Below, piece by piece: positions 895-63,100 of a stretch of DNA of 64,000 bases (position 1 is the first letter of the stretch; each line of letters opens with the position of its first letter). The DNA comes from Phaeosaccion multiseriatum. Lineage: Eukaryota > Protista > Ochrophyta, other classes. The stretch spans positions 3,267,856 to 3,331,855 of the forward strand of contig OZ218962.1 of the NCBI GenBank assembly GCA_965112735.1, in the 5' to 3' direction. A program made the translations under genes and the position numbers. Below the pieces are notes generated by a model, which did no database searches, was not told where the DNA came from, and worked only from the letters and a program-made list of their open reading frames with translations.

Positions 895-11191
<10,297 letters not shown>

Positions 11192-11369
11192 GGTGTAGCT
11201 TGTTGTCGTCTCTTTCTATGCAGGCACCTTGCTCGGACTAGAAATGCGCACCCCGTCGGTCATGTGGTGGCTCTTGCCTACGCAATGCAGTGGTGCATGC
11301 AGACCTCTGAGCCTCTATCCCTCCTGCTTCTGTTTTTTTTCTCTCTCGCCTCCTCCTTTCCAGAAAACG

Positions 11370-11470
11370 TAACCGTAAAAAAGTGCCAGTTTGATAATTA
11401 AAGGGGTGGTCAAACGTGGTCAAAGTCAGCGTCAAGTGGCATTAATACGAAGCGTCAAAAGTGCCACACA
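11370..11470. mobile_element. Degenerate fragment of the MITE family seen at 24.5-25.4 kb
   Basis: Contains CGTAAAAAAGTGCCA and GCGTCAAAAGTGCCAC, which match the MITE terminal region; AT-rich intergenic context. Confidence 0.5.
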
Positions 11471-11616
11471 ACTCCCCCCCCCCCCCAAAACACATTGGTC
11501 TATAAAATACATAAAATAAATTATCATCTATGCTCTTGGAGCAGTGGCCTGCCCTTATGGCCTGCCCTTACTGACAGCGCCCCTTCTCTCTGCCCATATG
11601 CCTCCTCTGGTTACAG

Positions 11617-13045
11617 TTACAGTCGGTGCAGGATCTTCACCACCTCCTCGAAGGAGGGCCGCACATTCGGGTTCTGAGGGGGGGAGGGGGGGGCAGCAGA
11701 TGGCACCATATGGCAGCAACAGGGAACGTTAGTCGCAGCACTGCTCAGCAGGGGACAGGAGAGCCTACACTTTGCTACATTCACTGCCTTACCGTGTGCC
11801 AGCAGCGCTGCATGAGCTTGGCGGTGTTGGCAGGGCACGACGAGGGGATGCGTGGACGCTCTTGGCGGTTCAGCACCGCCGCCACCACCTGGCAGTGAGC
11901 AGGGCACACAGTAGGGAACAGTCAGTCAGTCAGTCAGTCAGTCAGTCAGTCAGGCCGTGAATCAGGCGTCAGTGACTCAGGCAGCAACGAAGGGCTAGTA
12001 ACTCAGTAAGTCAGTGAATCAGTACCTGCACGGGCTGCATGCCGCCGTAGGGGATTTCGCGTGTGTAAATCTCCCACAGGATGATGCCGAAGCTGAACAC
12101 GTCGGCCTTCTCCGTGTAGTGCTGCGAGTTGATGACTTCTGGTGCCATCCAATGGTACGTGCCCGCCTGCCCCGTCATCTTCTCTGAGGCGGAGGTGGCT
12201 TTGAAGCGGCTCAACCCGAAGTCCGTCACCTGTCGCGGAGAGAGAGAGAGAGAGAGAGAGGTGTGTTGAGGAGACAGAGGTGAATCAACGTGCATGATGC
12301 AACCCAAGCAACACCTCCTCACAAATGGCGTACCTTGGTGACCCAATGCTCGTCGATGAGCACGTTGAGGCTCTTGAGGTCCCTGTGGATGATGACGGGG
12401 TTTTGATTGTGCAAGTAGCGCATGCCCTCCGCAGTGTCCAGTGCCATCCTCCGCTTGTGCACCCACTCGAGCCGTACGTCCCTGTCTGCCAGCAGGGCCA
12501 TGAGGTTCCCTCTGCTGCAGTACTCCATGACGCACGTGACGGGCTGCACGGTGGTGGCCACGAGCGTGATGATGTTCTTGTGCCTGAGGCGGCGCAGGAG
12601 GGCGCACTCGGTCTTGAAGTCCTTGAGAGTCTTCTCAATGGGCCCTCCGCCGCCACCCACAAGCTTCTTCACCGCCACCTCGTTGCCCCTGGGGGGGGAG
12701 GGATCGAGAGAGGAGAGGGGAAGAGAAGAGAAGGGCTTCAGTCATTGGGAAGGACGGGGGTGGGGCAACACGCCACATCAACTAATGCCCTGCGTCTCTT
12801 GCAAGAGCCTCTCCTCTCCTCTCCTCTCCTCTCCTCTCCTCTCCTCTCGCCTCCCTCCCTGCCTCACCTGTAGATTCCCTTGAACACGAGCGCGAACGCC
12901 CCTGCCCCAAGCACCCCTGTGAGGCGCAGCTCGGTATTGAAGTCCACCACCCCGCCCTGCGCATGGAAGAAAGCGACGAGGTCCGTGAAGGCGGCGCGCC
13001 CCCCCGGGGTCAGGCGCTCCTTCCAGGGCTCGTGTCTGGCAGAGG

Positions 13046-50214: not shown

Positions 50215-50646
50215 GTGGGGTTGAAATGGTCCTGCCATGGTCGTCATCTGTGAGCCCCGGTGGGTCATCTGGCGCCCGATTTCGACACGGGAGGGTGGAA
50301 GTGTGCTTTCTCTGGACCGGCGAGACTGAAATGATCCCGCCATGGTCGTCATGAGTGGGCCGTGCGTCTCTGGTGTGCTCGGTGTGGTTGTACACTCTGT
50401 TCTGTGGGGTTGAAATGGCCCATCTTTGAGCCCCGGTGGGTCATCTGGCGCCCGATTGCGTCACGGGAGGTTTGAACTGAGCTTTCTCTGGGCCGGCGGG
50501 ACTGAAATGATCCCGCCATGGTCGTCATGAGTCTACCGTGCGTCTCTGGTGTGCCCGGTGTGGTTGTACACTCTGTTCTGTGGGGTTGAAATGGCCCATC
50601 TGTGTGCCCAGGTGGGTCATCTGGCGCCCGATTGCGACACGGGAGG
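50215..50646. repeat. 176-bp subtelomeric tandem repeat (~2.5 copies), interrupted by the retroelement block
   Basis: GGGAGG recurs at 50289, 50465 and 50641; the array resumes in register at 56772. Confidence 0.88.
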
Positions 50647-50954
50647 TGTTAGAAGTCGTACTTTTGCTAGACTGATACCTGCCCTCTGAATTCAGACCGG
50701 GAGGTATCAGTCTAGCAAAAGTACGACTTCTAACAAGACCGTTGCTAGAAGACGAACCCCCCCCCCCCACCGCACATAGTGAAGAGAAGTAACTCGCAGT
50801 CTGAGAATCAGCATCATGGGCCAGCAAGCTGGTAACAGTTTTCGCCGAAAAATACGCTTTTTTCACAAGCGACAGCTAAGGTTCGAACTCACAACTAGCC
50901 TTGTTAGAAGTCGTACTTTTGCTAGACTGATACCTGCCCTCTGAATTCAGACCG
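50647..50954 (+). repeat. Hairpin-bearing ~255-bp unit (copy A, 1.2 units)
   Basis: 89-bp inverted repeat at 50647-50735 (TGTTAGAAG...CTTCTAACA), then a spacer, then a second left arm at 50902-50954 joined directly to pol; diverged from the 59-60 kb copies. Confidence 0.9.
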
Positions 50955-51009
50955 CCCCCATGTACACCAAGCCGCTGGCACGGGTCTGAGCGGCGTTGGG
51001 GACGTTGCT

Positions 51010-54000
51010 GTGGCCGCATGGGCCCAACAGCTCTTGTCGTTGTGGTCTAGTCGCCCATTACAGCAGCAGGAGAAGGTGGAGCAGGATATGACCAATGCGC
51101 TGCTGCTCCTTATCCAATTGCGAACGGTGCTGCAGGAGAGTCGCTGTCTTGGTGGGGGAGTGGAGTCGTGGGATGCAGGAGAGCTTGTGGTGGAGCAGCG
51201 GCGCCGTGCCAAGCTCACTACGGAGAGGGCTCAGTTCTGGCTCAGGGAGCTACCGTCGCCCCTGCACGCTATCACGATTGGCGACGGTGCCTGGACGGAG
51301 GTGCAACGCTGGGGACTGGTGGCGATCCTTCGCGCTCGGTCGCAAGCATTCTGTCAGAGGCCTGGTGACTACGGTCGGACGGATACTCTCTTCTTTGAGT
51401 GGGGACTGAAGGATGCGAATCAGCAGCCCATTCGGAGCTCCGCTCGACGGTATCCTCCACATTTGCGGCGGGGGATTGAGATTGAGATTGACAAGCTTCT
51501 CGCGGCTGCCATCATTCGCCCCAGCACTTCCAGCTGGGCCACTCCGCTGATGGCGGTCTTGAAGACGGACGCAGCTGGCAAAACCAAGTGTCATGAGGAT
51601 GGGACGCCTGTGGTACGTATGACGTGTGACTTGTCTCAGCTGAATGATGCGTGTCGCACGGAGGCCCCTGCGATGCCGGTAATTGATGATCTGCTGGCAG
51701 AGATGCATGGATCCAAGGTGTTCTCGGTGATGGACATCATGTCGGGCTACTTCAATGTGCCGATGGCATCAGCAGCGGAAGAGGATATATCCACCTTTGT
51801 GTGCCACAGTGGTACTTACGCTTGGCGAGTGATGCCGCAGGGCGCGAAGAATGCGCCTGCAGTCTTTGTGCGGCTTATGAATACGGTGCTCAAAGGGCTT
51901 CAGGAGCATGTGGCATGCTTTGTGGACGATATTGCAGTGTTTTCGGCTACGGTGGAGCAGCATCTGGAGCATTTGGATGCGGTGCTTGCGCGGTTGGTGG
52001 AGCACAAGCTCAAGCTGGAGCCGAGTAAGGCAGTGTTGGGTGCACCGGAGGTGCGGTTCTGCGGGCATTTGCTGGATCAGAACGGGGTGCGCACAGACCC
52101 GGCTAAGCATGCGGCGGTGCAAGAGCTGGTCAAGCCGTTGAGGTTACTTGCGAAGGATGGCGGCGTCAATCGAGTTAAGCAGGTGCGGCGTTTCATTGGC
52201 ATGCTCAGCTATTTTCGCCGCTTCATTCCGGAGTTTGCGCGCAAAGTGCGGCCCCTCAATGGGCTACTGCGTAAGGGCGTCGACGTGAGCACCGCCTGGA
52301 ATGCCTCGCACGATGCAGCTTGGGATGGACTCGTCGCCGACTTGTTGTCTTCTCCTGCGCTGGCCTTTCCGGAGTACGGGCCAGAGACGACTTTCACCCT
52401 CAGCACCGATGCTTCGACGGACGGTTTAGCAGGAGTGCTCTCCCAGACAGATGCGACCGGAGAGGAGCGGGTGGTGACATTCATCAGTCGGGCTACCACA
52501 GAGACTGAGGCCCGACTGAGCAGCACGGAGCTGGAGCTGCTGGCAGTGGTGTGGTGCGTGCGTAAACTGGCCATGTACATCTGCCACTACCCCACCACCG
52601 TGGTGACAGACCATCAGCCCTTGTTGTGGTTGGCTGGGCACAAGGATACCAATTCCAAGCTGTTCAGATGGTACGAGCGGCTCTCTACGCACCACTTGCA
52701 GTTTGTGCATCGTCCCGGGAAGCAAATGGTGGTGCCTGACTGCCTCTCTCGCAACGCGCTTCCGGTGCAGGAGTGGGAGACGCATGCGGGGGTAGACTTG
52801 GCCATGGTTGAGTGCGAGTGGCCGTCGCCCTTGCACACCTGGTGTGCTTCGATGGGGGTGCAGTTGAACCTGGTGGAGATGGTAGGGGACGAGTGCAGCC
52901 TTCATTGGGAGGAGCCCACGGAGGGCGCACTGCTTCGCTTTCTCGCAGTGGCGCAACAGCTGCAGGGCGAAGCCGACACACGCCTTCCTATTCCTGTGCC
53001 TGCCGTGACGGCCCAGCAACAGCAGCAACGGTGCCACCACCAGCAGCAGAGCGGAGCGGAGGCCCTACAAGCCTGGCAGACTGCAGAGGTGGACTTGTCG
53101 GCGACGCAGTCACGCAGGGGTACTGCTCGGCGTGCTTGGACACAGCGTCTTCAGCAATGTGGATGGCAGCCTACGCGAGCACCTCAGCTGGGTGTGAAGA
53201 AGGCTGTGATAGAGGCCTGGCAGCCGGGTCAGATGCCGCCATTTGTGAGTCACATCTCCGCAGCGAGGTGCACGTACGTATCTACGCCGAGGCACGTGCA
53301 GGCTCTATCGACTCAGTTGCGCTCAGCCAAAGTGGTCGCTATGGATTCGGAGTGGGCGCGTCACCGACGGCGCGCGTCGCTGCTGCAATTGGCCGTGCAG
53401 GTTGGGCCGCTGCCGGATGTGGCGCGTGACTATGGGCTCTTGATTGATCTAGACGCGCTTCAGAAGGCGGGGGGTATGATGGTACTGGCGCAAGTGTTGC
53501 GGGACCTGTGGGCCGAACCCTCGATTGTGAAGCTGGCTCACCACTGGAGTCACGACCAACGTGCCCTGGGCCGATGGCCGGAGCTCGCGGAGCATGTCCA
53601 GCACATCGTCAACTTGGTGGACACCAGTGACCTCTTTAAGCGCGTGTGCCCCGAACATACTCAGTTCATCGGACTCCAGGACCTTGTCAGCATGTTTTTG
53701 GAGCAACACCTTAGCAAGGAGGAGCGGGCCACCGATTGGACGAAGCGGCCGCTGTCCGCCGCTCAACGGGAGTACGCGTTTGCTGACGCTGCGGCGCTCC
53801 TCCGCCTCTGGCCTCGCATGGCGGAGTGTGTGCCGTTCGTCCATGGTGGCCCGGGGGTGGAGCTTAGCGCGATGAGCCCTGCTCACACCCCTGCGGAGCA
53901 GGAGGAGATGCAAGTCGGCAGGTTCATGCAGGCCGCGGTTGGTTATTGGGGCGATCGCGACCACGTGTCACCGCTCTACATCTTTGGTGTCCACTCCAAG

Positions 54001-56538
54001 ACGTTGGAGGTATTCGACCTGGCCAAACTGCAATTCAAACTGCAGTGCTCGTGGGAGACAATGATGCAGATGGTGGAGCGGTTCACGCGGACATATAAGC
54101 GCCAGCGGAAGGTGGTGGGCGCGTTGGCCAGTCATCTAGATACCATGATCGAGTTGCCATGGAAGCAAGTCCGTCAGGTGTCGCGTGACTACTTCTCGAT
54201 GTGCACACCAGCGGAGGCTCAGCAAACGGGTGCCGCGGCCGCTCATGCGTGGGCTGCATGGGAGGCCGAGCTTGAGGAGGATGCGTCTCGTCTGCCCTCG
54301 GAGGTATGTCCAGCTGCTGTTGCTGGTGCCACCGAGGGTGAGGAGCTTGTTACGGAGGAGGGCCGCATCACCCACCCTGGGGAGCCGCCTGCTGCGGAGT
54401 CGCCGTCGGAGCCTGGTACGGCAGATCTACTGGTCACGGAAGAAGCGGGGGATGCAGGTGATGAAGCTGCGGATGCAGTGGATAATGAAGCTGAGGAGGC
54501 AGTGGATTCAGTTTCCAAGGAGCCGGTGGAGCAGGAGTCCACCTTGCAGCGCGAACTTGATGGGCATCGACGAGAGGCAGAGCGACAGTTTGGGTGGTCT
54601 CTACCAGGCACGGTGCGTGCTGCCGCGGCGCACAGACGAGCGGCTGGAGCTTTGGGTGGCAGTCTGCATGTCGAGGCCGCGTGGTGGGTGCGTGCGCAGC
54701 GGGCTGATGCGGAGCTGGAAGCACTCCGTCGCCGTGTTCAGGCTGGGCCCACCGGCGGCGTGGTGGATGCAGGTGGGGGTGAGTTCTTTGTGGATGAGGA
54801 CGGGCTCTTGATGCGTAAGTGGGCTCCTGGGGGCTTTCGGTGGCGGGTGCGGCACACTCGGCTACAAGTATGTGTGCCCAAGGAGATGCGGCCAGCCTTG
54901 CTGCATGCCGCCCACACCGATGCCATCGCAGGTGGGCACCAAGGCCCGGGACGTATGCTAGACGCGCTGCAAGAGCGCGTATGGTGGGAGAAGATGAATG
55001 CACATGCGCTGTATTGGGCCCGCTCCTGTCTGGCGTGCCAGACCCGCAAGACTCCTCGCCGGCAGCCAAAGCCTGTGCCGCTGTCGTCCATTTCCAAGGT
55101 GGATGGACCTTGGGCGGTCATGGGCGCTGATGTGGCTGGCCCCTTTCCTATGGGCATGGGCGGTGAGGAGTACCTCTTGGTGTTTCAGGATTGGTTCACG
55201 AAGTGGACAGTGGTGGTGCCTTTGAGGGCACAGGACTATACGGCGGAAGGTATTGCTCGGGCCTTCGTGCGGCATGTCGTCACCACCCTGGGTGTGCCCC
55301 GAGTGCTGGTGAGTGATCAAGGCTCGCAGTTCACCAGTGCGCTCATGGGCGATGTGATGCGGGTTCTATCGGCGTCGCAAGTGTTCACGACGCCAATGCA
55401 CCAACAGGCCAATGGGCAGGTGGAGCGCTTCATGGCCACGATCAAGGACATGTTGGCGACGACCGTGGAGTCACAGATGCAGCAGTGGCCAGATTACGTC
55501 GCCGGGCTCACCTATGCGTACAACTGCCGCTCGCAGGAGAGCACGGGGATGGCGCCATTCTACGCCTTGTTCGGTCGGCACCCCCCGGTGCCTCTACAGG
55601 CGATGCTTCCGGCGCTAGTGGAGGACGGGTCGTTTTCGTCTGCCTCGGCATGGGTCCACGAACTGCGGGCACGTCTGGCTGTGGCTGCGGCGGTGGTCAA
55701 TGGGAGGCGCTGCGACTACCACGGGAGATTGCAGCTGAAGAACGCCTCACGCCGTTGGCCGACGCCCCTGCGACCCGGCACCAAGGTGATGTTGTATCGT
55801 CCTGGTGCCGCCGCCCAGCAAGAAGGGGAAGAACTCGAAGGGCCCCCGTCAGCGCAACTCAAGGCTCTGCAGCACTCGTGGGATGGTCCTTATACAGTCT
55901 TGCCTTGGCCATCTCTGGGGGCCTACTGTGCTCAGCATGGGCGGGTGAGTGAAGAGCACTATCAGGTCATGCAGCGCAGCGCAGTGTATCTGTCTATGAA
56001 ACGGGTGCGCGGCAATGGTGTGGAGCAGCTGCAACGGGCGTACCACAGAGACTTGACGAAGCCGTTCATCGATGGGGTGAGCGAGCGGCCCTTCGGTCTC
56101 CCGGAAGGGTTCGCCAGGTATCATATCCGTTGGTGCTCTCCTCAGTGGGCTACCAGCGCAATGCAGGAGCAGCGTAGCTTAGAGCTGGACGAGGTGAGTG
56201 AAGGGAAAGTGCCCACGCTGGCGAGGATTGTGAAGTTCCGCTGGCGCAAAGCCACGGGGCTGCCACTGCGGCGAGAGTATAACGTGCGGTGGGCGGTGTC
56301 GGACGGCGGCACTTTCCAGACCTGGGAATGGGCTGAGTGGTTACTGGAGCGGGGACACGCCAAGGCCATAGAGGCGTTCGAGAACGCCCTCCCGCACACT
56401 GCCCTTGATCCAGGAGTGAATGTCAAAAGAGGGCATAGGTCTAAACGGGAAAGCACGATCCGTCTGCGGCAACATGAGAAGTGGGGCAGCGGGCTGGCGC
56501 ACGAGACGCAATTCTATCGCTCGCATCTCGGCTTCTGA
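51010..56538 (+). CDS. pol: Pol polyprotein (5'-truncated): RT, RNase H, DEDDy 3'-5' exonuclease, integrase (H2C2, DDE, GPY/F), chromodomain
   Basis: RT: SSWATP, MDIMSGY, VMPQGAKNAP, FVDDIAVFS. RH: TDAS, ELELLAV, TDH, PDCLSR. Exonuclease: MDSEW, HHWSHD, REYAFAD. IN: H..GGH..CLAC, ADVAGP, SDQGSQF, GQVER, WDGPY. Chromodomain: RIVKFR..EYNVRW..TWE. The frame is open back to 50926 with no ATG at its 5' end. Confidence 0.93.
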   Translation: MAAWAQQLLSLWSSRPLQQQEKVEQDMTNALLLLIQLRTVLQESRCLGGGVESWDAGELVVEQRRRAKLTTERAQFWLRELPSPLHAITIGDGAWTEVQRWGLVAILRARSQAFCQRPGDYGRTDTLFFEWGLKDANQQPIRSSARRYPPHLRRGIEIEIDKLLAAAIIRPSTSSWATPLMAVLKTDAAGKTKCHEDGTPVVRMTCDLSQLNDACRTEAPAMPVIDDLLAEMHGSKVFSVMDIMSGYFNVPMASAAEEDISTFVCHSGTYAWRVMPQGAKNAPAVFVRLMNTVLKGLQEHVACFVDDIAVFSATVEQHLEHLDAVLARLVEHKLKLEPSKAVLGAPEVRFCGHLLDQNGVRTDPAKHAAVQELVKPLRLLAKDGGVNRVKQVRRFIGMLSYFRRFIPEFARKVRPLNGLLRKGVDVSTAWNASHDAAWDGLVADLLSSPALAFPEYGPETTFTLSTDASTDGLAGVLSQTDATGEERVVTFISRATTETEARLSSTELELLAVVWCVRKLAMYICHYPTTVVTDHQPLLWLAGHKDTNSKLFRWYERLSTHHLQFVHRPGKQMVVPDCLSRNALPVQEWETHAGVDLAMVECEWPSPLHTWCASMGVQLNLVEMVGDECSLHWEEPTEGALLRFLAVAQQLQGEADTRLPIPVPAVTAQQQQQRCHHQQQSGAEALQAWQTAEVDLSATQSRRGTARRAWTQRLQQCGWQPTRAPQLGVKKAVIEAWQPGQMPPFVSHISAARCTYVSTPRHVQALSTQLRSAKVVAMDSEWARHRRRASLLQLAVQVGPLPDVARDYGLLIDLDALQKAGGMMVLAQVLRDLWAEPSIVKLAHHWSHDQRALGRWPELAEHVQHIVNLVDTSDLFKRVCPEHTQFIGLQDLVSMFLEQHLSKEERATDWTKRPLSAAQREYAFADAAALLRLWPRMAECVPFVHGGPGVELSAMSPAHTPAEQEEMQVGRFMQAAVGYWGDRDHVSPLYIFGVHSKTLEVFDLAKLQFKLQCSWETMMQMVERFTRTYKRQRKVVGALASHLDTMIELPWKQVRQVSRDYFSMCTPAEAQQTGAAAAHAWAAWEAELEEDASRLPSEVCPAAVAGATEGEELVTEEGRITHPGEPPAAESPSEPGTADLLVTEEAGDAGDEAADAVDNEAEEAVDSVSKEPVEQESTLQRELDGHRREAERQFGWSLPGTVRAAAAHRRAAGALGGSLHVEAAWWVRAQRADAELEALRRRVQAGPTGGVVDAGGGEFFVDEDGLLMRKWAPGGFRWRVRHTRLQVCVPKEMRPALLHAAHTDAIAGGHQGPGRMLDALQERVWWEKMNAHALYWARSCLACQTRKTPRRQPKPVPLSSISKVDGPWAVMGADVAGPFPMGMGGEEYLLVFQDWFTKWTVVVPLRAQDYTAEGIARAFVRHVVTTLGVPRVLVSDQGSQFTSALMGDVMRVLSASQVFTTPMHQQANGQVERFMATIKDMLATTVESQMQQWPDYVAGLTYAYNCRSQESTGMAPFYALFGRHPPVPLQAMLPALVEDGSFSSASAWVHELRARLAVAAAVVNGRRCDYHGRLQLKNASRRWPTPLRPGTKVMLYRPGAAAQQEGEELEGPPSAQLKALQHSWDGPYTVLPWPSLGAYCAQHGRVSEEHYQVMQRSAVYLSMKRVRGNGVEQLQRAYHRDLTKPFIDGVSERPFGLPEGFARYHIRWCSPQWATSAMQEQRSLELDEVSEGKVPTLARIVKFRWRKATGLPLRREYNVRWAVSDGGTFQTWEWAEWLLERGHAKAIEAFENALPHTALDPGVNVKRGHRSKRESTIRLRQHEKWGSGLAHETQFYRSHLGF
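53270..53825 (+). other. DEDDy 3'-5' exonuclease domain (Mut-7/EXD3/WRN/RNase D-like) inside Pol
   Basis: ExoI VVAMDSEW, SLLQLA, ExoII KLAHHWSHDQRAL, VDTSDL, GLQDLVSMFLEQHLSKEERATDWTKRPLSAAQREYAFADA (ExoIII). Confidence 0.9.
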
Positions 56539-56576
56539 GGGAGCTAGCGGAAGAAGCGGGGGTGTAGTGAGGGGGA

Positions 56577-56771
56577 TGTTAGAAGTGGCCTAGTTGGGGT
56601 CCCTTGGGGACCCAATCAGTAGTGTAACGGCCGGAAAACGGGCCAACTAGACGGTAAATCAGTAATAAAGAAAGGAAGCGCAGCCTGCGTGTGGGCTGGC
56701 TTCCGGGTGCTTGCTTCAGCTTCTGCTCTGCTCTAGCTTGGCTTTGAGGCTAGCTGTCGGTAGTTTCGACT
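56577..56771 (+). repeat. Putative 3' LTR (~195 bp)
   Basis: Starts TGTTAGAAG immediately after GAGGGGGA; AATAAA at 56664; 3' end is ambiguous (..TTTCGACT, no CA) and there is no partner LTR. Confidence 0.6.
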
Positions 56772-56925
56772 GAGGGTGGAAGTGTGCTTTCTCTGGACCG
56801 GCGAGACTGAAATGATCCCGCCATGGTCGTCATGAGTGGGCCGTGCGTCTCTGGTGTGCCCGGTGTGGTTGTACACTCTGTTCTGTTAGGTTGAAATGGC
56901 CCATCTGTGAGCCCCGGTGGGTCTT
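56772..56925. repeat. Continuation of the 176-bp repeat
   Basis: Near-identical to 50291-50445. Confidence 0.88.
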
Positions 56926-58012
56926 CGTCCGAGGCCTCAGGACTCGAGAACCAGTGGAGCCCCACAACGTCCGAGACCTCAAGACTCGAGAACCACTTGA
57001 GAACCACTTCGTCCGCGGCCTCAGGACTCGAGAACCAGTGGAGAACCACTTCGTCCGAGGCCTCAGGACTCGAGAACCAGTGGAGAACCACTTCGTCCGA
57101 GGCCTCAGGACGCGAGAACCACTTGAGAACCACTTCGTCCGAGGCCTCAGGACTCGAGAACCACTTGAGAACCACTTCGTCCGAGGCCTCAGGACTCGAG
57201 AACCACTTGAGAACCACTTCGTCCAAGGCCTCAGGACTCGAGAACCACTTGAGAACCACTTCGTCCGCGGCCTCAGGACGCGAGAACCACTTGAGAACCA
57301 CTTCGTCCGAGGCCTCAGGACTCGAGAACCACTTGAGAACCACTTCGTCCGCGGCCTCAGGACTCGAGAACCACTTGAGAACCACTTCGTCCGAGGCCTC
57401 AGGACGCGAGAACCACTTGAGAACCACTTCGTCCGCGGCCTCAGGACTCGAGAACCACTTGAGAACCACTTCGTCCGAGGCCTCAGGACGCGAGAACCAG
57501 TGCAGAACCACTTCGTCCGAGGCCTCAGGACGCGAGAACCAGTGGAGAACCACTTCGTCCGAGGCCTCAGGACGCGAGAACCACTTGAGAACCACTTCGT
57601 CCGAGGCCTCAGGACTCGAGAACCAGTGGAGAACCACTTCGTCCGAGGCCTCAGGACTCGAGAAGCAGTGGAGAACCACCTTGTCCGAGGCCTCAGGACG
57701 CGAGAACCAGTGGAGAACCACTTCGTCCGAGGCCTCAGGACTCGAGAACCACTTGAGAACCACTTCGTCCGAGGCCTCAGGACTCGAGAACCACTTGAGA
57801 ACCACTTCGTCCGCGGCCTCAGGACTCGAGAACCACTTGAGAACCACTTCGTCCGAGGCCTCAGGACGCGAGAACCAGTGGAGAACCACTTCGTCCGAGG
57901 CCTCAGGACGCGAGAACCAGTGGAGAACCACTTCGTCCGAGGCCTCAGGACTCGAGAACCACCTGAGAACCACTTCGGCCGAGGCCTCAGGACTCGAGAA
58001 CCAGTGGAGAAT
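56922..58012. repeat. 42-bp subtelomeric minisatellite, ~26 copies
   Basis: GAACCACTTCGTCCGAGGCCTCAGGACTCGAGAACCACTTGA with a few recurring biallelic positions; no spacers. Confidence 0.95.
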
Positions 58013-58373
58013 GTGCTATTGTCCTACACAGTGTTGGTCATACATTCAGGGGTCACAGAAATATGAGTGTAACCTTCATGGACACCCCTGACCCAGGGGG
58101 GATAGATAGAAAGCGTGTGGAGAGCACTCTTTTTCTTGCAAGCTCTAAGTGAGTAGTAAAGACTTAATACGGACACCGACGCCCCACCAGAGGCGCGGCG
58201 AATACTTGGTCCAAACCCCTTAAGCTTTTCTACGTCAGCTTAGCACAGAACTAGTTCTCGCATAAAGAGTTGCGAAAGAAGAATAACAGCAGTTGCAGGA
58301 GTTCTGAGGAGACGTCCAACGAGACTTCAGCAGCGACAGACATCAGTGCAGTCTTCTAGGGGAACCTAGGAGG

Positions 58374-59225
58374 ATGGTTACGCCTTCAGAGCAGGATAAG
58401 TATGACACCAGCGATTGGAGAGGAGATTGGCCGATTCTTAAAGGGCAGAAGACTCCGATCAGAGTGAACACCTTTGTGTATGGCTATGAGAGGTGCGCAG
58501 AGAGAATGAGACTCGCTAGACAGCAAGCTCGCATTCCCGACATGGCTACTTTGTTGGACCCTGTTCTGAGAACGCAAGCCAGCGTTGAGTTAAAGGTACA
58601 GGTAACAGAGCTGAACACTGAGAACGTGAAGAAATGGCTCAAGGATTGGTAAAAGGAACATTCTGAGAGCGACGTGCAAGGAGAGACACTTGCATCTATT
58701 GCCGACGAGATCACGATAGAATGTGCGAATCGTGAGAACGCCGGAGCGCTGAAGGAGGCTTTAATATATGCCCACACGGAGTTTTTGGGTATGATCAAGA
58801 ACAGCTCCTTCAGCTCCCTCTTGCAGACGGAGGATGGCACTGCAGACAATTGGTGGCTGCCCAAGGATAAGGCGGCTACGAAGTCCATCAGGTTTGCTTT
58901 CAACAGTGTCTTGAGCCGATTTGATTCCAATATGGTGAAGCTCATTAAAGATGCCGAGAGACAGTGGCAGAGCTCGATTGATTGGGACAAGAACTACAAG
59001 CAGTGGTTTGAGCTCGTGCTTGATATCCACATGGGGTGGGCTAATGCTCGAGCTGCTGCCGCGCGAGCGAATCTCACGGCGGAACAGGCCTTGCCCAACT
59101 TGAAGAAGACGGGAGGAGGCGGCTCTGCTAATTCTGGAAAGGGGGGAGAGCCCGCCTGGAAGAAGAAGAAGCAAGAGCAGGCGGCGGCCAAGAATGGTGC
59201 AGCTGCGAGTGGTGGTCCGTGTTAG
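58374..59225 (+). pseudogene. Disrupted intronless ORF, probably retroelement gag-like
   Basis: ORFs 58374-58652 and 58674-59225 share a frame and are separated by one TAA. A helical-looking body is followed by a G/K-rich tail ending 'GGPC', where the hairpin unit truncates it (the position where a zinc knuckle would begin). Lower GC than the host genes. Confidence 0.5.
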
Positions 59226-59518
59226 AAGTCGTGCTTTTGCTAGACTGGTACCTACCCTCTGAATTCAGACCGGGAGGTACCAGTCTAGCAAAAGCACGAC
59301 TTCTAACAAGCCCTAATGCTAGAAGTCGAACCCCCCCCCCCCCACCGCACATAGTGGAGAGAAGTAACTCGCAGTCTGGGAATCAGACTAATGGGTGCCA
59401 GCCGGTACCAGTTTTCGCCGAAAAACACACTTTTTTCACAAGCTACAGCCAGGATTCGAACTCGCAATGGCCTTGTTAGAAGTCGTGCTTTTGCTAGACT
59501 GGTACCTACCCTCTGAAT
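59220..59518 (+). repeat. Hairpin-bearing 254-bp unit (copy B, 1.2 units)
   Basis: Hairpin at 59220-59308; second left arm at 59474-59518 ending at the palindrome centre. Confidence 0.92.
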
Positions 59519-59737
59519 ATATTATAAGGGAAACGCATCAGTGAGCGAGGCCTCACACACGTCCTCGCAGCGTGCTACAATCGCCAGGTTGGTCTGAGGT
59601 AGAGAAGGGAAGGGAATGATGTGCTTTGTGTTGGCAAAAGAGCTAAAGCAACACAGCGAACACTGCCCCCCCTCGTATTTCCCGTACGTGCCGAGTCCGA
59701 TGCTTAACTTCCTCCCCCCCTCCCTCCCTAATATTAT

Positions 59738-60176
59738 ATTCAGAGGGTAGGTACCAGTCTAGCAAAAGCACGACTTCTAACAAGGCCATTGCGAGTTCGA
59801 ATCCTGGCTGTAGCTTGTGAAAAAAGTGTGTTTTTCGGCGAAAACTGGTACCGGCTGGCACCCATTAGTCTGATTCCCAGACTGCGAGTTACTTCTCTCC
59901 ACTATGTGCGGTGGGGGGGGGGGTTCGACTTCTAGCATTAGGGCTTGTTAGAAGTCGTGCTTTTGCTAGACTGGTACCTCCCGGTCTGAATTCAGAGGGT
60001 AGGTACCAGTCTAGCAAAAGCACGACTTCTAACAAGGCCATTGCGAGTTCGAATCCTGGCTGTAGCTTGTGAAAAAAGTGTGTTTTTCGGCGAAAACTGG
60101 TACCGGCTGGCACCCATTAGTCTGATTCCCAGACTGCGAGTTACTTCTCTCCACTATGTGCGGTGGGGGGGGGGGG
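59738..60176 (-). repeat. Inverted array of the same unit (copy C, ~1.7 units) abutting the telomere
   Basis: Reverse complement of copy B; full hairpin at 59946-60034. Confidence 0.92.
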
Positions 60177-63100
60177 TTAGGGTTAGGGTTAGGGTTAGGG
60201 TTAGGGTTAGGGTTAGGGTTAGGGTTAGGGTTAGGGTTAGGGTTAGGGTTAGGGTTAGGGTTAGGGTTAGGGTTAGGGTTAGGGTTAGGGTTAGGGTTAG
60301 GGTTAGGGTTAGGGTTAGGGTTAGGGTTAGGGTTAGGGTTAGGGTTAGGGTTAGGGTTAGGGTTAGGGTTAGGGTTAGGGTTAGGGTTAGGGTTAGGGTT
60401 AGGGTTAGGGTTAGGGTTAGGGTTAGGGTTAGGGTTAGGGTTAGGGTTAGGGTTAGGGTTAGGGTTAGGGTTAGGGTTAGGGTTAGGGTTAGGGTTAGGG
60501 TTAGGGTTAGGGTTAGGGTTAGGGTTAGGGTTAGGGTTAGGGTTAGGGTTAGGGTTAGGGTTAGGGTTAGGGTTAGGGTTAGGGTTAGGGTTAGGGTTAG
60601 GGTTAGGGTTAGGGTTAGGGTTAGGGTTAGGGTTAGGGTTAGGGTTAGGGTTAGGGTTAGGGTTAGGGTTAGGGTTAGGGTTAGGGTTAGGGTTAGGGTT
60701 AGGGTTAGGGTTAGGGTTAGGGTTAGGGTTAGGGTTAGGGTTAGGGTTAGGGTTAGGGTTAGGGTTAGGGTTAGGGTTAGGGTTAGGGTTAGGGTTAGGG
60801 TTAGGGTTAGGGTTAGGGTTAGGGTTAGGGTTAGGGTTAGGGTTAGGGTTAGGGTTAGGGTTAGGGTTAGGGTTAGGGTTAGGGTTAGGGTTAGGGTTAG
60901 GGTTAGGGTTAGGGTTAGGGTTAGGGTTAGGGTTAGGGTTAGGGTTAGGGTTAGGGTTAGGGTTAGGGTTAGGGTTAGGGTTAGGGTTAGGGTTAGGGTT
61001 AGGGTTAGGGTTAGGGTTAGGGTTAGGGTTAGGGTTAGGGTTAGGGTTAGGGTTAGGGTTAGGGTTAGGGTTAGGGTTAGGGTTAGGGTTAGGGTTAGGG
61101 TTAGGGTTAGGGTTAGGGTTAGGGTTAGGGTTAGGGTTAGGGTTAGGGTTAGGGTTAGGGTTAGGGTTAGGGTTAGGGTTAGGGTTAGGGTTAGGGTTAG
61201 GGTTAGGGTTAGGGTTAGGGTTAGGGTTAGGGTTAGGGTTAGGGTTAGGGTTAGGGTTAGGGTTAGGGTTAGGGTTAGGGTTAGGGTTAGGGTTAGGGTT
61301 AGGGTTAGGGTTAGGGTTAGGGTTAGGGTTAGGGTTAGGGTTAGGGTTAGGGTTAGGGTTAGGGTTAGGGTTAGGGTTAGGGTTAGGGTTAGGGTTAGGG
61401 TTAGGGTTAGGGTTAGGGTTAGGGTTAGGGTTAGGGTTAGGGTTAGGGTTAGGGTTAGGGTTAGGGTTAGGGTTAGGGTTAGGGTTAGGGTTAGGGTTAG
61501 GGTTAGGGTTAGGGTTAGGGTTAGGGTTAGGGTTAGGGTTAGGGTTAGGGTTAGGGTTAGGGTTAGGGTTAGGGTTAGGGTTAGGGTTAGGGTTAGGGTT
61601 AGGGTTAGGGTTAGGGTTAGGGTTAGGGTTAGGGTTAGGGTTAGGGTTAGGGTTAGGGTTAGGGTTAGGGTTAGGGTTAGGGTTAGGGTTAGGGTTAGGG
61701 TTAGGGTTAGGGTTAGGGTTAGGGTTAGGGTTAGGGTTAGGGTTAGGGTTAGGGTTAGGGTTAGGGTTAGGGTTAGGGTTAGGGTTAGGGTTAGGGTTAG
61801 GGTTAGGGTTAGGGTTAGGGTTAGGGTTAGGGTTAGGGTTAGGGTTAGGGTTAGGGTTAGGGTTAGGGTTAGGGTTAGGGTTAGGGTTAGGGTTAGGGTT
61901 AGGGTTAGGGTTAGGGTTAGGGTTAGGGTTAGGGTTAGGGTTAGGGTTAGGGTTAGGGTTAGGGTTAGGGTTAGGGTTAGGGTTAGGGTTAGGGTTAGGG
62001 TTAGGGTTAGGGTTAGGGTTAGGGTTAGGGTTAGGGTTAGGGTTAGGGTTAGGGTTAGGGTTAGGGTTAGGGTTAGGGTTAGGGTTAGGGTTAGGGTTAG
62101 GGTTAGGGTTAGGGTTAGGGTTAGGGTTAGGGTTAGGGTTAGGGTTAGGGTTAGGGTTAGGGTTAGGGTTAGGGTTAGGGTTAGGGTTAGGGTTAGGGTT
62201 AGGGTTAGGGTTAGGGTTAGGGTTAGGGTTAGGGTTAGGGTTAGGGTTAGGGTTAGGGTTAGGGTTAGGGTTAGGGTTAGGGTTAGGGTTAGGGTTAGGG
62301 TTAGGGTTAGGGTTAGGGTTAGGGTTAGGGTTAGGGTTAGGGTTAGGGTTAGGGTTAGGGTTAGGGTTAGGGTTAGGGTTAGGGTTAGGGTTAGGGTTAG
62401 GGTTAGGGTTAGGGTTAGGGTTAGGGTTAGGGTTAGGGTTAGGGTTAGGGTTAGGGTTAGGGTTAGGGTTAGGGTTAGGGTTAGGGTTAGGGTTAGGGTT
62501 AGGGTTAGGGTTAGGGTTAGGGTTAGGGTTAGGGTTAGGGTTAGGGTTAGGGTTAGGGTTAGGGTTAGGGTTAGGGTTAGGGTTAGGGTTAGGGTTAGGG
62601 TTAGGGTTAGGGTTAGGGTTAGGGTTAGGGTTAGGGTTAGGGTTAGGGTTAGGGTTAGGGTTAGGGTTAGGGTTAGGGTTAGGGTTAGGGTTAGGGTTAG
62701 GGTTAGGGTTAGGGTTAGGGTTAGGGTTAGGGTTAGGGTTAGGGTTAGGGTTAGGGTTAGGGTTAGGGTTAGGGTTAGGGTTAGGGTTAGGGTTAGGGTT
62801 AGGGTTAGGGTTAGGGTTAGGGTTAGGGTTAGGGTTAGGGTTAGGGTTAGGGTTAGGGTTAGGGTTAGGGTTAGGGTTAGGGTTAGGGTTAGGGTTAGGG
62901 TTAGGGTTAGGGTTAGGGTTAGGGTTAGGGTTAGGGTTAGGGTTAGGGTTAGGGTTAGGGTTAGGGTTAGGGTTAGGGTTAGGGTTAGGGTTAGGGTTAG
63001 GGTTAGGGTTAGGGTTAGGGTTAGGGTTAGGGTTAGGGTTAGGGTTAGGGTTAGGGTTAGGGTTAGGGTTAGGGTTAGGGTTAGGGTTAGGGTTAGGGTT

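Follow-up and report, generated by a model that had tools for sequence, protein, structure and literature searches.

A giant lineage of chromovirus-like Ty3/Gypsy retrotransposons carries an exonuclease as an integral, in-frame part of its Pol polyprotein, situated between RNase H (RH) and integrase (IN). The copy that revealed this arrangement lies in a 64,000-nucleotide stretch of the genome of the ochrophyte Phaeosaccion multiseriatum (contig OZ218962.1, positions 3,267,856 to 3,331,855 of the forward strand; hereafter the window) and belongs to the first of two families of long terminal repeat (LTR) retrotransposons, denoted A and B. An initial annotation of the window had read one uninterrupted frame of 1842 amino acids (aa) as reverse transcriptase (RT) - RNase H - exonuclease - integrase - chromodomain. 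The open reading frame (ORF) and the Pfam calls agree with this order as far as the integrase, whose rve core match scores 28.2 bits, under the curated cut-off of 32.6 bits. The native RNase H keeps its motifs, as had been stated, with TDAS, ELELLA, TDHQ and VPDCLSR all located in the window ORF and the RT_RNaseH match covering aa 458-559. The chromodomain survives only in part: Pfam Chromo gave no match in the C-terminus of the window ORF, but this region aligns weakly (BLASTP, pairwise E 5e-4) with a Chromo-positive stretch of the Haematococcus Gypsy protein P0151.

The exonuclease, which had been placed at 53270-53825 of the window, corresponds to a Pfam match to PF01612 (DNA_pol_A_exo1) at nt 53275-53823, with an E value of 7.7e-21 and a score of 75.1 bits against a cut-off of 23.6 bits. 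The full set of five DEDDy catalytic residues was predicted and is present (D779, E781, D849, Y922 and D926); these residues are invariant in alignment A1, whose 24 sequences are drawn from both element families, from P0001 (a metagenome fragment) and from cellular homologues. The region aa 740-960 was modelled with AlphaFold2 (pLDDT 91, pTM 0.87), and the model finds its best Foldseek matches in the Nibbler EXO domain, which ranks first, Trypanosoma and yeast Rrp6, the WRN exonuclease, RNase D and EXD2, with a probability of 1.00 and E values of 1e-11 to 1e-9 for the top matches. A sequence search of solved structures returned the same group of exonucleases more weakly (E 1e-5 to 1e-2). DEDDy nucleases and RNase H have the RNase H-like superfold in common. 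A second, archaeal-type RNase H of the kind known from Tat and Chronos elements was nevertheless rejected, because the structural neighbours, like the Pfam matches, are all DEDDy exonucleases; the original placement in the Mut-7/Nibbler/WRN/RNase D group is thereby upheld. By Pfam, Mut7-C (PF01927) is absent from the window ORF and from the full-length pols. Taken together, sequence and model identify the domain almost certainly as a DEDDy 3'-5' exonuclease of the RNase D/Mut-7/WRN type, and one that is apparently catalytically competent.

Sister elements carry the domain as well, in keeping with the initial expectation. Across the 67 Mb of the genome (22 contigs), 45 exonuclease matches were found, about 20 of them in family A (94-100% identity) and about 10 in family B (~59%), the others being fragments. 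All family A and B matches lie within long pol frames, and at least 30 copies occur on 11 contigs. Each of the ~20 intact family A or B RTs is followed by an exonuclease match 1.1-1.7 kb downstream, and no intact-frame copy without the exonuclease was found in the genome. All RTs in the genome that are at least 80% identical belong to one of the two families; the next-nearest RT is at most 37% identical, so that the genome holds no close sister element without the exonuclease.

Continuity of the frame is likewise borne out independently of the window assembly. Logan contigs from two separate studies of the same organism span both the RH-exonuclease and the exonuclease-IN junctions: one extends from RT through RH into the exonuclease (X1 record 1, 51000-53849), and two others connect the exonuclease through the linker to IN (X4 record 13, 53748-55198; X5 record 21, 53608-54469). 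Moreover, a plant-associated metagenome (run X6) yielded pieces 90-95% alike to window 51000-56800, and thus a related strain or species with the element lives on or in plants. Given the number of copies, the bridging of the junctions by independent contigs, the uniformly DEDDy character of the Pfam and Foldseek matches and the lack of any close counterpart among the cellular PF01612 loci of the host, it is scarcely credible that the layout arose from chimeric assembly, from a host exon lodged within a single copy or from an archaeal-type RNase H mistaken for an exonuclease.

Comparison of the two families indicates that the domain is constrained. Along the polyprotein, identity rises to 46-72% in the exonuclease and is 24-40% in the linkers on either side, so that the domain stands out as a local peak; over the domain, families A and B are 59% identical. 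The corresponding dN/dS is 0.21-0.23, compared with ~0.3 for the flanking linkers, 0.05 for RT, 0.06 for RNase H and 0.08 for integrase. Judged by these substitution patterns, the exonuclease is under purifying selection, and the non-neutral evolution anticipated for it is thus found. Within families, dN/dS was uninformative owing to too few substitutions and to copies that are mosaic across subfamilies. Among the family A copies (L001-L016), for example, L003 matches L011 exactly in RT but the two have a dS of 0.27 in linker 1, while the pair L003/L016 shows the reverse pattern, which suggests recombination between subfamilies.

The architecture of the intact element was read from a full-length family A copy on contig C1. 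This copy measures 12,569 bp, in a lineage that ranges from 12.6 to 13.7 kb, and is bounded by LTRs of 196 bp each (TG...CA), at 100% identity to each other, from which a recent insertion follows, the lineage being regarded as recently active; it has a 4-bp CACA target-site duplication and a purine tract. ORF1 is a gag of 619 aa with a CCHC knuckle (C-x2-C-x4-H-x4-C), and the pol frame of ~3250-3274 aa lies in frame with it, the coding capacity of gag + pol in the window lineage being ~3900 aa. In full-length copies of both families, Pfam places the domains in the order RT - RH - Exo - IN. A weak gag-asp_proteas match (E 0.009) occurs in family B only, and the protease may correspond to a conserved island at pol aa 701-950.

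Signals for expression and priming were read from the full-length copies. In the C1 copy (L031:5520-5580), Gag ends with TGA, beyond which pol keeps to the same frame, and a GC-rich hairpin, GGGCTGCT..AGCAGCCC, begins 8 nt past the gag stop; this combination suggests that Gag-Pol is made by stop-codon readthrough in the manner of gammaretroviruses. No tRNA-type primer-binding site (PBS; TGG...) was found 3' of the 5' LTR in family A (L031:3038-3262) or in family B (the copy on contig C9, and L063-L065). Instead, the PBS is complementary to a stretch of the LTR that lies ~25 nt 3' of a TATA-like box. The paired sequences are CTTCCGGGT/ACCCGGAAG in family A and AAACGGGT/ACCCGTTT in family B, a compensatory difference, and the elements apparently rely on self-priming of the Tf1 type rather than on tRNA priming.

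To place the exonuclease among its relatives, it was searched exhaustively by HMMER against 1.84 billion representative sequences, which returned 18 matches at E 1e-10 or better. The best of these, P0001, is a metagenome fragment of 186 aa on a 917-bp contig, with 47% identity; the others are cellular exonucleases at no more than 36% identity. Eight long cellular matches were scanned, of which four carry Mut7-C (P0014, P0018, P0020 and P0110) and none carries RT or IN. The window exonuclease had no match in a length-limited, word-sharing search of a protein database from which host proteins are seemingly absent, a scan of metagenome contigs with the alignment of families A and B and P0001 gave distant matches alone (29-43% identity), and an Atlas feature search returned merely generic plant-type PF01612 clusters. 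A search with the whole Pol, however, led to a distant Gypsy protein of 2793 aa, P0211, with the order RT - RH - PF01612 - IN - Chromo. With the P0211 exonuclease as query, ten more giant pols (1703-4065 aa) were recovered from ENA and Logan assemblies, nine of which have a precomputed PF01612 call; the tenth, P0237, scores 20.5 bits, below the cut-off.

These 11 giant Gypsy pols, denoted group P (2253-4065 aa, with partial ones of 1703 and 1978 aa), hold the exonuclease at the same RH-IN position, and five of them additionally have an rve call. Group P keeps the D-x-E, D and Y-x3-D motifs at ~23% identity. The spacing from RH to IN is 720-1440 aa in exonuclease bearers versus 25-320 aa in most other Gypsy relatives; in P0154, whose RT is the closest relative of that of the window lineage, RH and IN are 305 aa apart, with no exonuclease detectable in the spacer. 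Each of the two groups of bearers is monophyletic in the exonuclease tree and in the RT tree (SH-aLRT 99-100). Both trees leave the backbone unresolved, and either one ancient gain or two independent gains at the same junction are possible from these sequences. Recent capture from the present host was rejected, since none of the ~10 cellular PF01612 loci in its genome is close to the element exonuclease. Immediately upstream of the exonuclease-bearing pol on one metagenome contig of group P lies an ORF of 887 aa (L049:7201-9864) that has a NADAR domain and is possibly part of the element.

What the exonuclease does for the element can be approached from its place in Pol. Our favoured reading, to which we assign a probability of about 0.5, is that it acts within the replication particle on free 3' ends, most likely in editing the 3' ends of cDNA. 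The domain would be translated only within Gag-Pol, past the gag stop codon, and is for that reason expected to be packaged alongside RT and IN; once in the particle, it would act upon the free 3' ends of replication intermediates, and mismatched or non-templated nucleotides would be removed from cDNA 3' ends before strand transfer and integration. Translation as part of Gag-Pol, the fixed place between RH and IN in two deep lineages and kinship within PF01612 all favour an in-particle role at 3' ends. The same Pfam family includes the proofreading domain that is fused to A-family DNA polymerases. A replicative role inside the particle is, on sequence grounds, rather probable, while cDNA editing in particular is a tentative proposal that falls somewhat short of even odds. 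More speculative, and on balance unlikely, is the wider analogy by which the domain would proofread or edit ends in association with RT, as nidovirus ExoN does for its polymerase, and would by one or two gains at the RH-IN junction have allowed these Gypsy lineages to grow to ~2800-4000 aa of gag + pol.

Several considerations weigh against in-particle editing of cDNA. The closest sequence relatives are of the Mut-7 type and the top structural match is Nibbler, and both of these have RNA rather than DNA as their substrate. The rate at which the exonuclease evolves is three to four times that of RT or IN. Since some large LTR elements lack an exonuclease, size does not need proofreading. Finally, the protease could release the domain and let it act outside the particle. 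The main rival to cDNA editing is concerned with RNA: the domain might trim or degrade small RNAs of the host (siRNA, piRNA-like) or disturb the host Mut-7 pathway, and so counter silencing. Its nearest cellular homologues, which combine PF01612 with Mut7-C, and the first rank of the Nibbler EXO domain among structural matches speak for such a role. However, an in-Pol site past the gag stop implies low amounts of a protein that is probably sequestered in particles and would make a poor cytoplasmic suppressor, two deep lineages hold the domain exactly between RH and IN and not as a free ORF, and the window ORF and full-length pols are devoid of Mut7-C. We therefore regard counter-silencing as unlikely.

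A further possibility, to which we give slightly less weight again, is that the exonuclease processes RNA 3' ends for replication of the element itself, for example by trimming the 3' end of the genomic RNA or of a primer. Processing of retrotransposon RNA 3' ends has been suggested by Rodriguez et al. (PMC5408684). The relatives RNase D, Rrp6 and Mut-7 are all RNA 3' processors, and the elements apparently prime themselves in an unusual way. Yet in self-priming of the Tf1 type the RNase H cut is known to give a usable 3'-OH already, and no TGG-type PBS follows the 5' LTR; with no tRNA-type site and apparent self-priming, trimming of a tRNA CCA end is unlikely. An inactive or neutral passenger, be it a captured host fragment without a role or a mere structural spacer, would be compatible with evolution faster than that of RT and IN, with a dN/dS near linker values and with the rotifer ORFs discussed below, which show no clear departure from neutrality within genomes (PMC5408684). 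It is at odds with the retention of five catalytic residues across 59%-identical families, P0001 and the ~23%-identical group P, with a discrete conservation peak at a dN/dS of 0.22 and with the fact that the exonuclease is missing from no intact-frame copy; we consider a passenger very improbable.

The window copy itself represents element positions 6751-12568 of the 12,569-bp full-length copy (BLASTN), and its features are collected in Table 1. It is without gag, 5' LTR and promoter, and has lost the N-terminal ~1400 aa of pol together with any protease. Because the copy is 5'-truncated and the 1842-aa frame is a remnant, the GTG 'start' of that frame is not real. At the other end, the terminal A of the 3' LTR is absent at the junction.

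Table 1. Features of the family A element copy in the window (window positions; aa numbers refer to the 1842-aa frame)
Feature	Position	Strand	Basis
Family A LTR retrotransposon copy, 5'-truncated	50953..56770	+	BLASTN against full-length copy G000:C1, 99.2% over 5818 nt
Remnant of pol frame, 1842 aa, no interruption	51010..56538	+	ORF list
Reverse transcriptase RVT_1, aa 207-353	51628..52068	+	Pfam, E 2.6e-27
RNase H, Ty3/Gypsy type, aa 430-559	52297..52686	+	Pfam PF17919 + PF17917
Linker 1, poorly conserved, 32-38% identity family A vs B	52687..53274	+	
DEDDy 3'-5' exonuclease domain PF01612, aa 756-938	53275..53823	+	Pfam, AlphaFold2, Foldseek
ExoI motif D779-S-E781	53344..53352	+	Columns D40 and E42 of A1, both invariant; codons checked
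ExoII aspartate D849	53554..53556	+	Alignment and codon check
ExoIII motif Y922-x3-D926	53773..53787	+	Alignment and codon check
Linker 2, poorly conserved, without Pfam match	53824..54873	+	
Integrase: H2C2 zinc-binding, aa 1289-1348, and rve core, aa 1373-1459	54874..55386	+	Pfam
Chromodomain-like C-terminal module, weak	56227..56382	+	BLASTP E 5e-4, P0151
Polypurine-rich tract directly 5' of 3' LTR	56540..56575	+	Read from sequence
3' LTR, TGTTAGAAGT...TTTCGAC	56577..56770	+	100% identical to LTR of full-length copy

The truncation point at 50953 abuts a subtelomeric hairpin repeat, and a TTAGGG telomere begins near 60177, ~3.4 kb beyond the 3' LTR of the window copy. Subtelomeric hairpin units (window 50245-50995 and 59219-60175) share their initial TGTTAGAAGT with the LTR terminus; one such unit adjoins the truncation point, and inverted copies extend to the telomere. 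The interval from the element to the hairpin units next to the telomere holds a tandem array of ~32 units of 42 nt (window 56797-58146), after which a stretch of lower GC content (~51%; window 58374-59225) contains two ORFs of 92 and 183 aa with no assigned function.

Proximity to chromosome ends is a recurrent property of these elements. Nine of the 30 best copies reside less than 30 kb from a contig end, where ~2% would be expected by chance; they are found at both ends of C5, at both ends of C11, and at an end each of C13 and C16. About 12 further copies cluster at C14:2.3-2.74 Mb, possibly a centromere or heterochromatin island. This end-biased and clustered distribution fits chromodomain-guided targeting to heterochromatin. 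Subtelomeric copies occur in both orientations relative to the telomere, which argues against end attachment as in Terminons; together with the integrase and the target-site duplication, the mixed orientations led us to reject such a mechanism. Another subtelomeric Gypsy-type RT (contig C10, 8283-9338, minus strand), 34% identical, is located in a 4622-aa open frame, and no PF01612 match was found near it.

Reverse transcriptases are textbook examples of polymerases without proofreading. With the layout described here, a reverse-transcribing element might edit or trim the ends of its own nucleic acids, and it becomes testable whether retroelements use a nuclease of their own to edit cDNA or to fight small-RNA silencing. 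Young full-length copies with identical LTRs and two diverged families in one genome offer a good experimental entry, and the second deep lineage in environmental assemblies shows that the layout is not a one-off.

Several known systems resemble this arrangement in part. The cellular exonucleases Mut-7/EXD3/Nibbler, WRN, RNase D and Rrp6 have the same Pfam family, fold and five catalytic residues, and are the closest relatives in sequence (30-36% identity) and structure. Unlike them, the element exonuclease has no Mut7-C, HRDC or helicase partner, is embedded in a retroelement polyprotein and forms a clade of its own (SH-aLRT 99). In the Gypsy Pol of plant Tat and oomycete Chronos and Archon elements, too, the native RNase H is followed by an extra nuclease of the RNase H superfold; theirs, however, is an archaeal-type RNase H, whereas here it is a PF01612 DEDDy exonuclease. 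A DEDD-superfamily exonuclease is likewise linked to a replicative polymerase in nidovirus nsp14 ExoN and in the proofreading domain of A-family DNA polymerases. Nidoviruses with ExoN and the bearers reported here both have unusually large coding capacity, a correlation only; ExoN is of the DEDDh type and belongs to RNA viruses, whereas the enzyme here is DEDDy and its part in proofreading purely hypothetical. Like the present lineage, chromoviruses of the Tf1/Sushi group have the Gypsy order RT-RH-IN; a chromodomain-like C-terminus of IN, weakly matched in our elements, and priming that seems to start from the transcript's own 5' end are further points in common. At ~5 kb and without an exonuclease, they contrast with the ~3900 aa of gag + pol found here.

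The initial annotation knew of no precedent for a DEDDy exonuclease in such an element, and in this it has to be corrected. The bdelloid-rotifer LTR elements Juno and Vesta, as well as Athena Terminons, have an RNase D-like DEDDy ORF3 in which the motif reads DEED (Rodriguez, Kenefick & Arkhipova 2017, PMC5408684). These ORFs were acquired at least twice and are of unknown function; their authors propose 3'-end processing of retrotransposon RNAs (PMC5408684). Outside Repbase, GyDB and REXdb, the literature searched yielded the rotifer ORF3 as the sole precedent and no case of a DEDDy exonuclease built in frame into Pol between RNase H and integrase; the Troyka paper makes no mention of an exonuclease. 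The rotifer elements (PMC5408684, PMC6431247; Arkhipova & Yushenova 2019) thus share with ours an RNase D/Mut-7/WRN-type DEDDy enzyme in LTR retroelements and, often, a location near telomeres. Terminon/Athena elements combine a Penelope-like RT with the lack of an integrase and a fixed 3'-to-telomere orientation, in contrast to the Gypsy RT, integrase and mixed orientation seen here. In the rotifers the exonuclease is a separate ORF3 downstream of pol in which DEDD has become DEED; in the present lineage it is an in-frame Pol domain with a canonical DEDDy set, it resides in chromovirus-like elements whose host is not an animal, and purifying selection on it is measurable. What was known as an accessory ORF3 in rotifers is therefore extended here to a new form, a DEDDy exonuclease that is a fixed domain of Pol.

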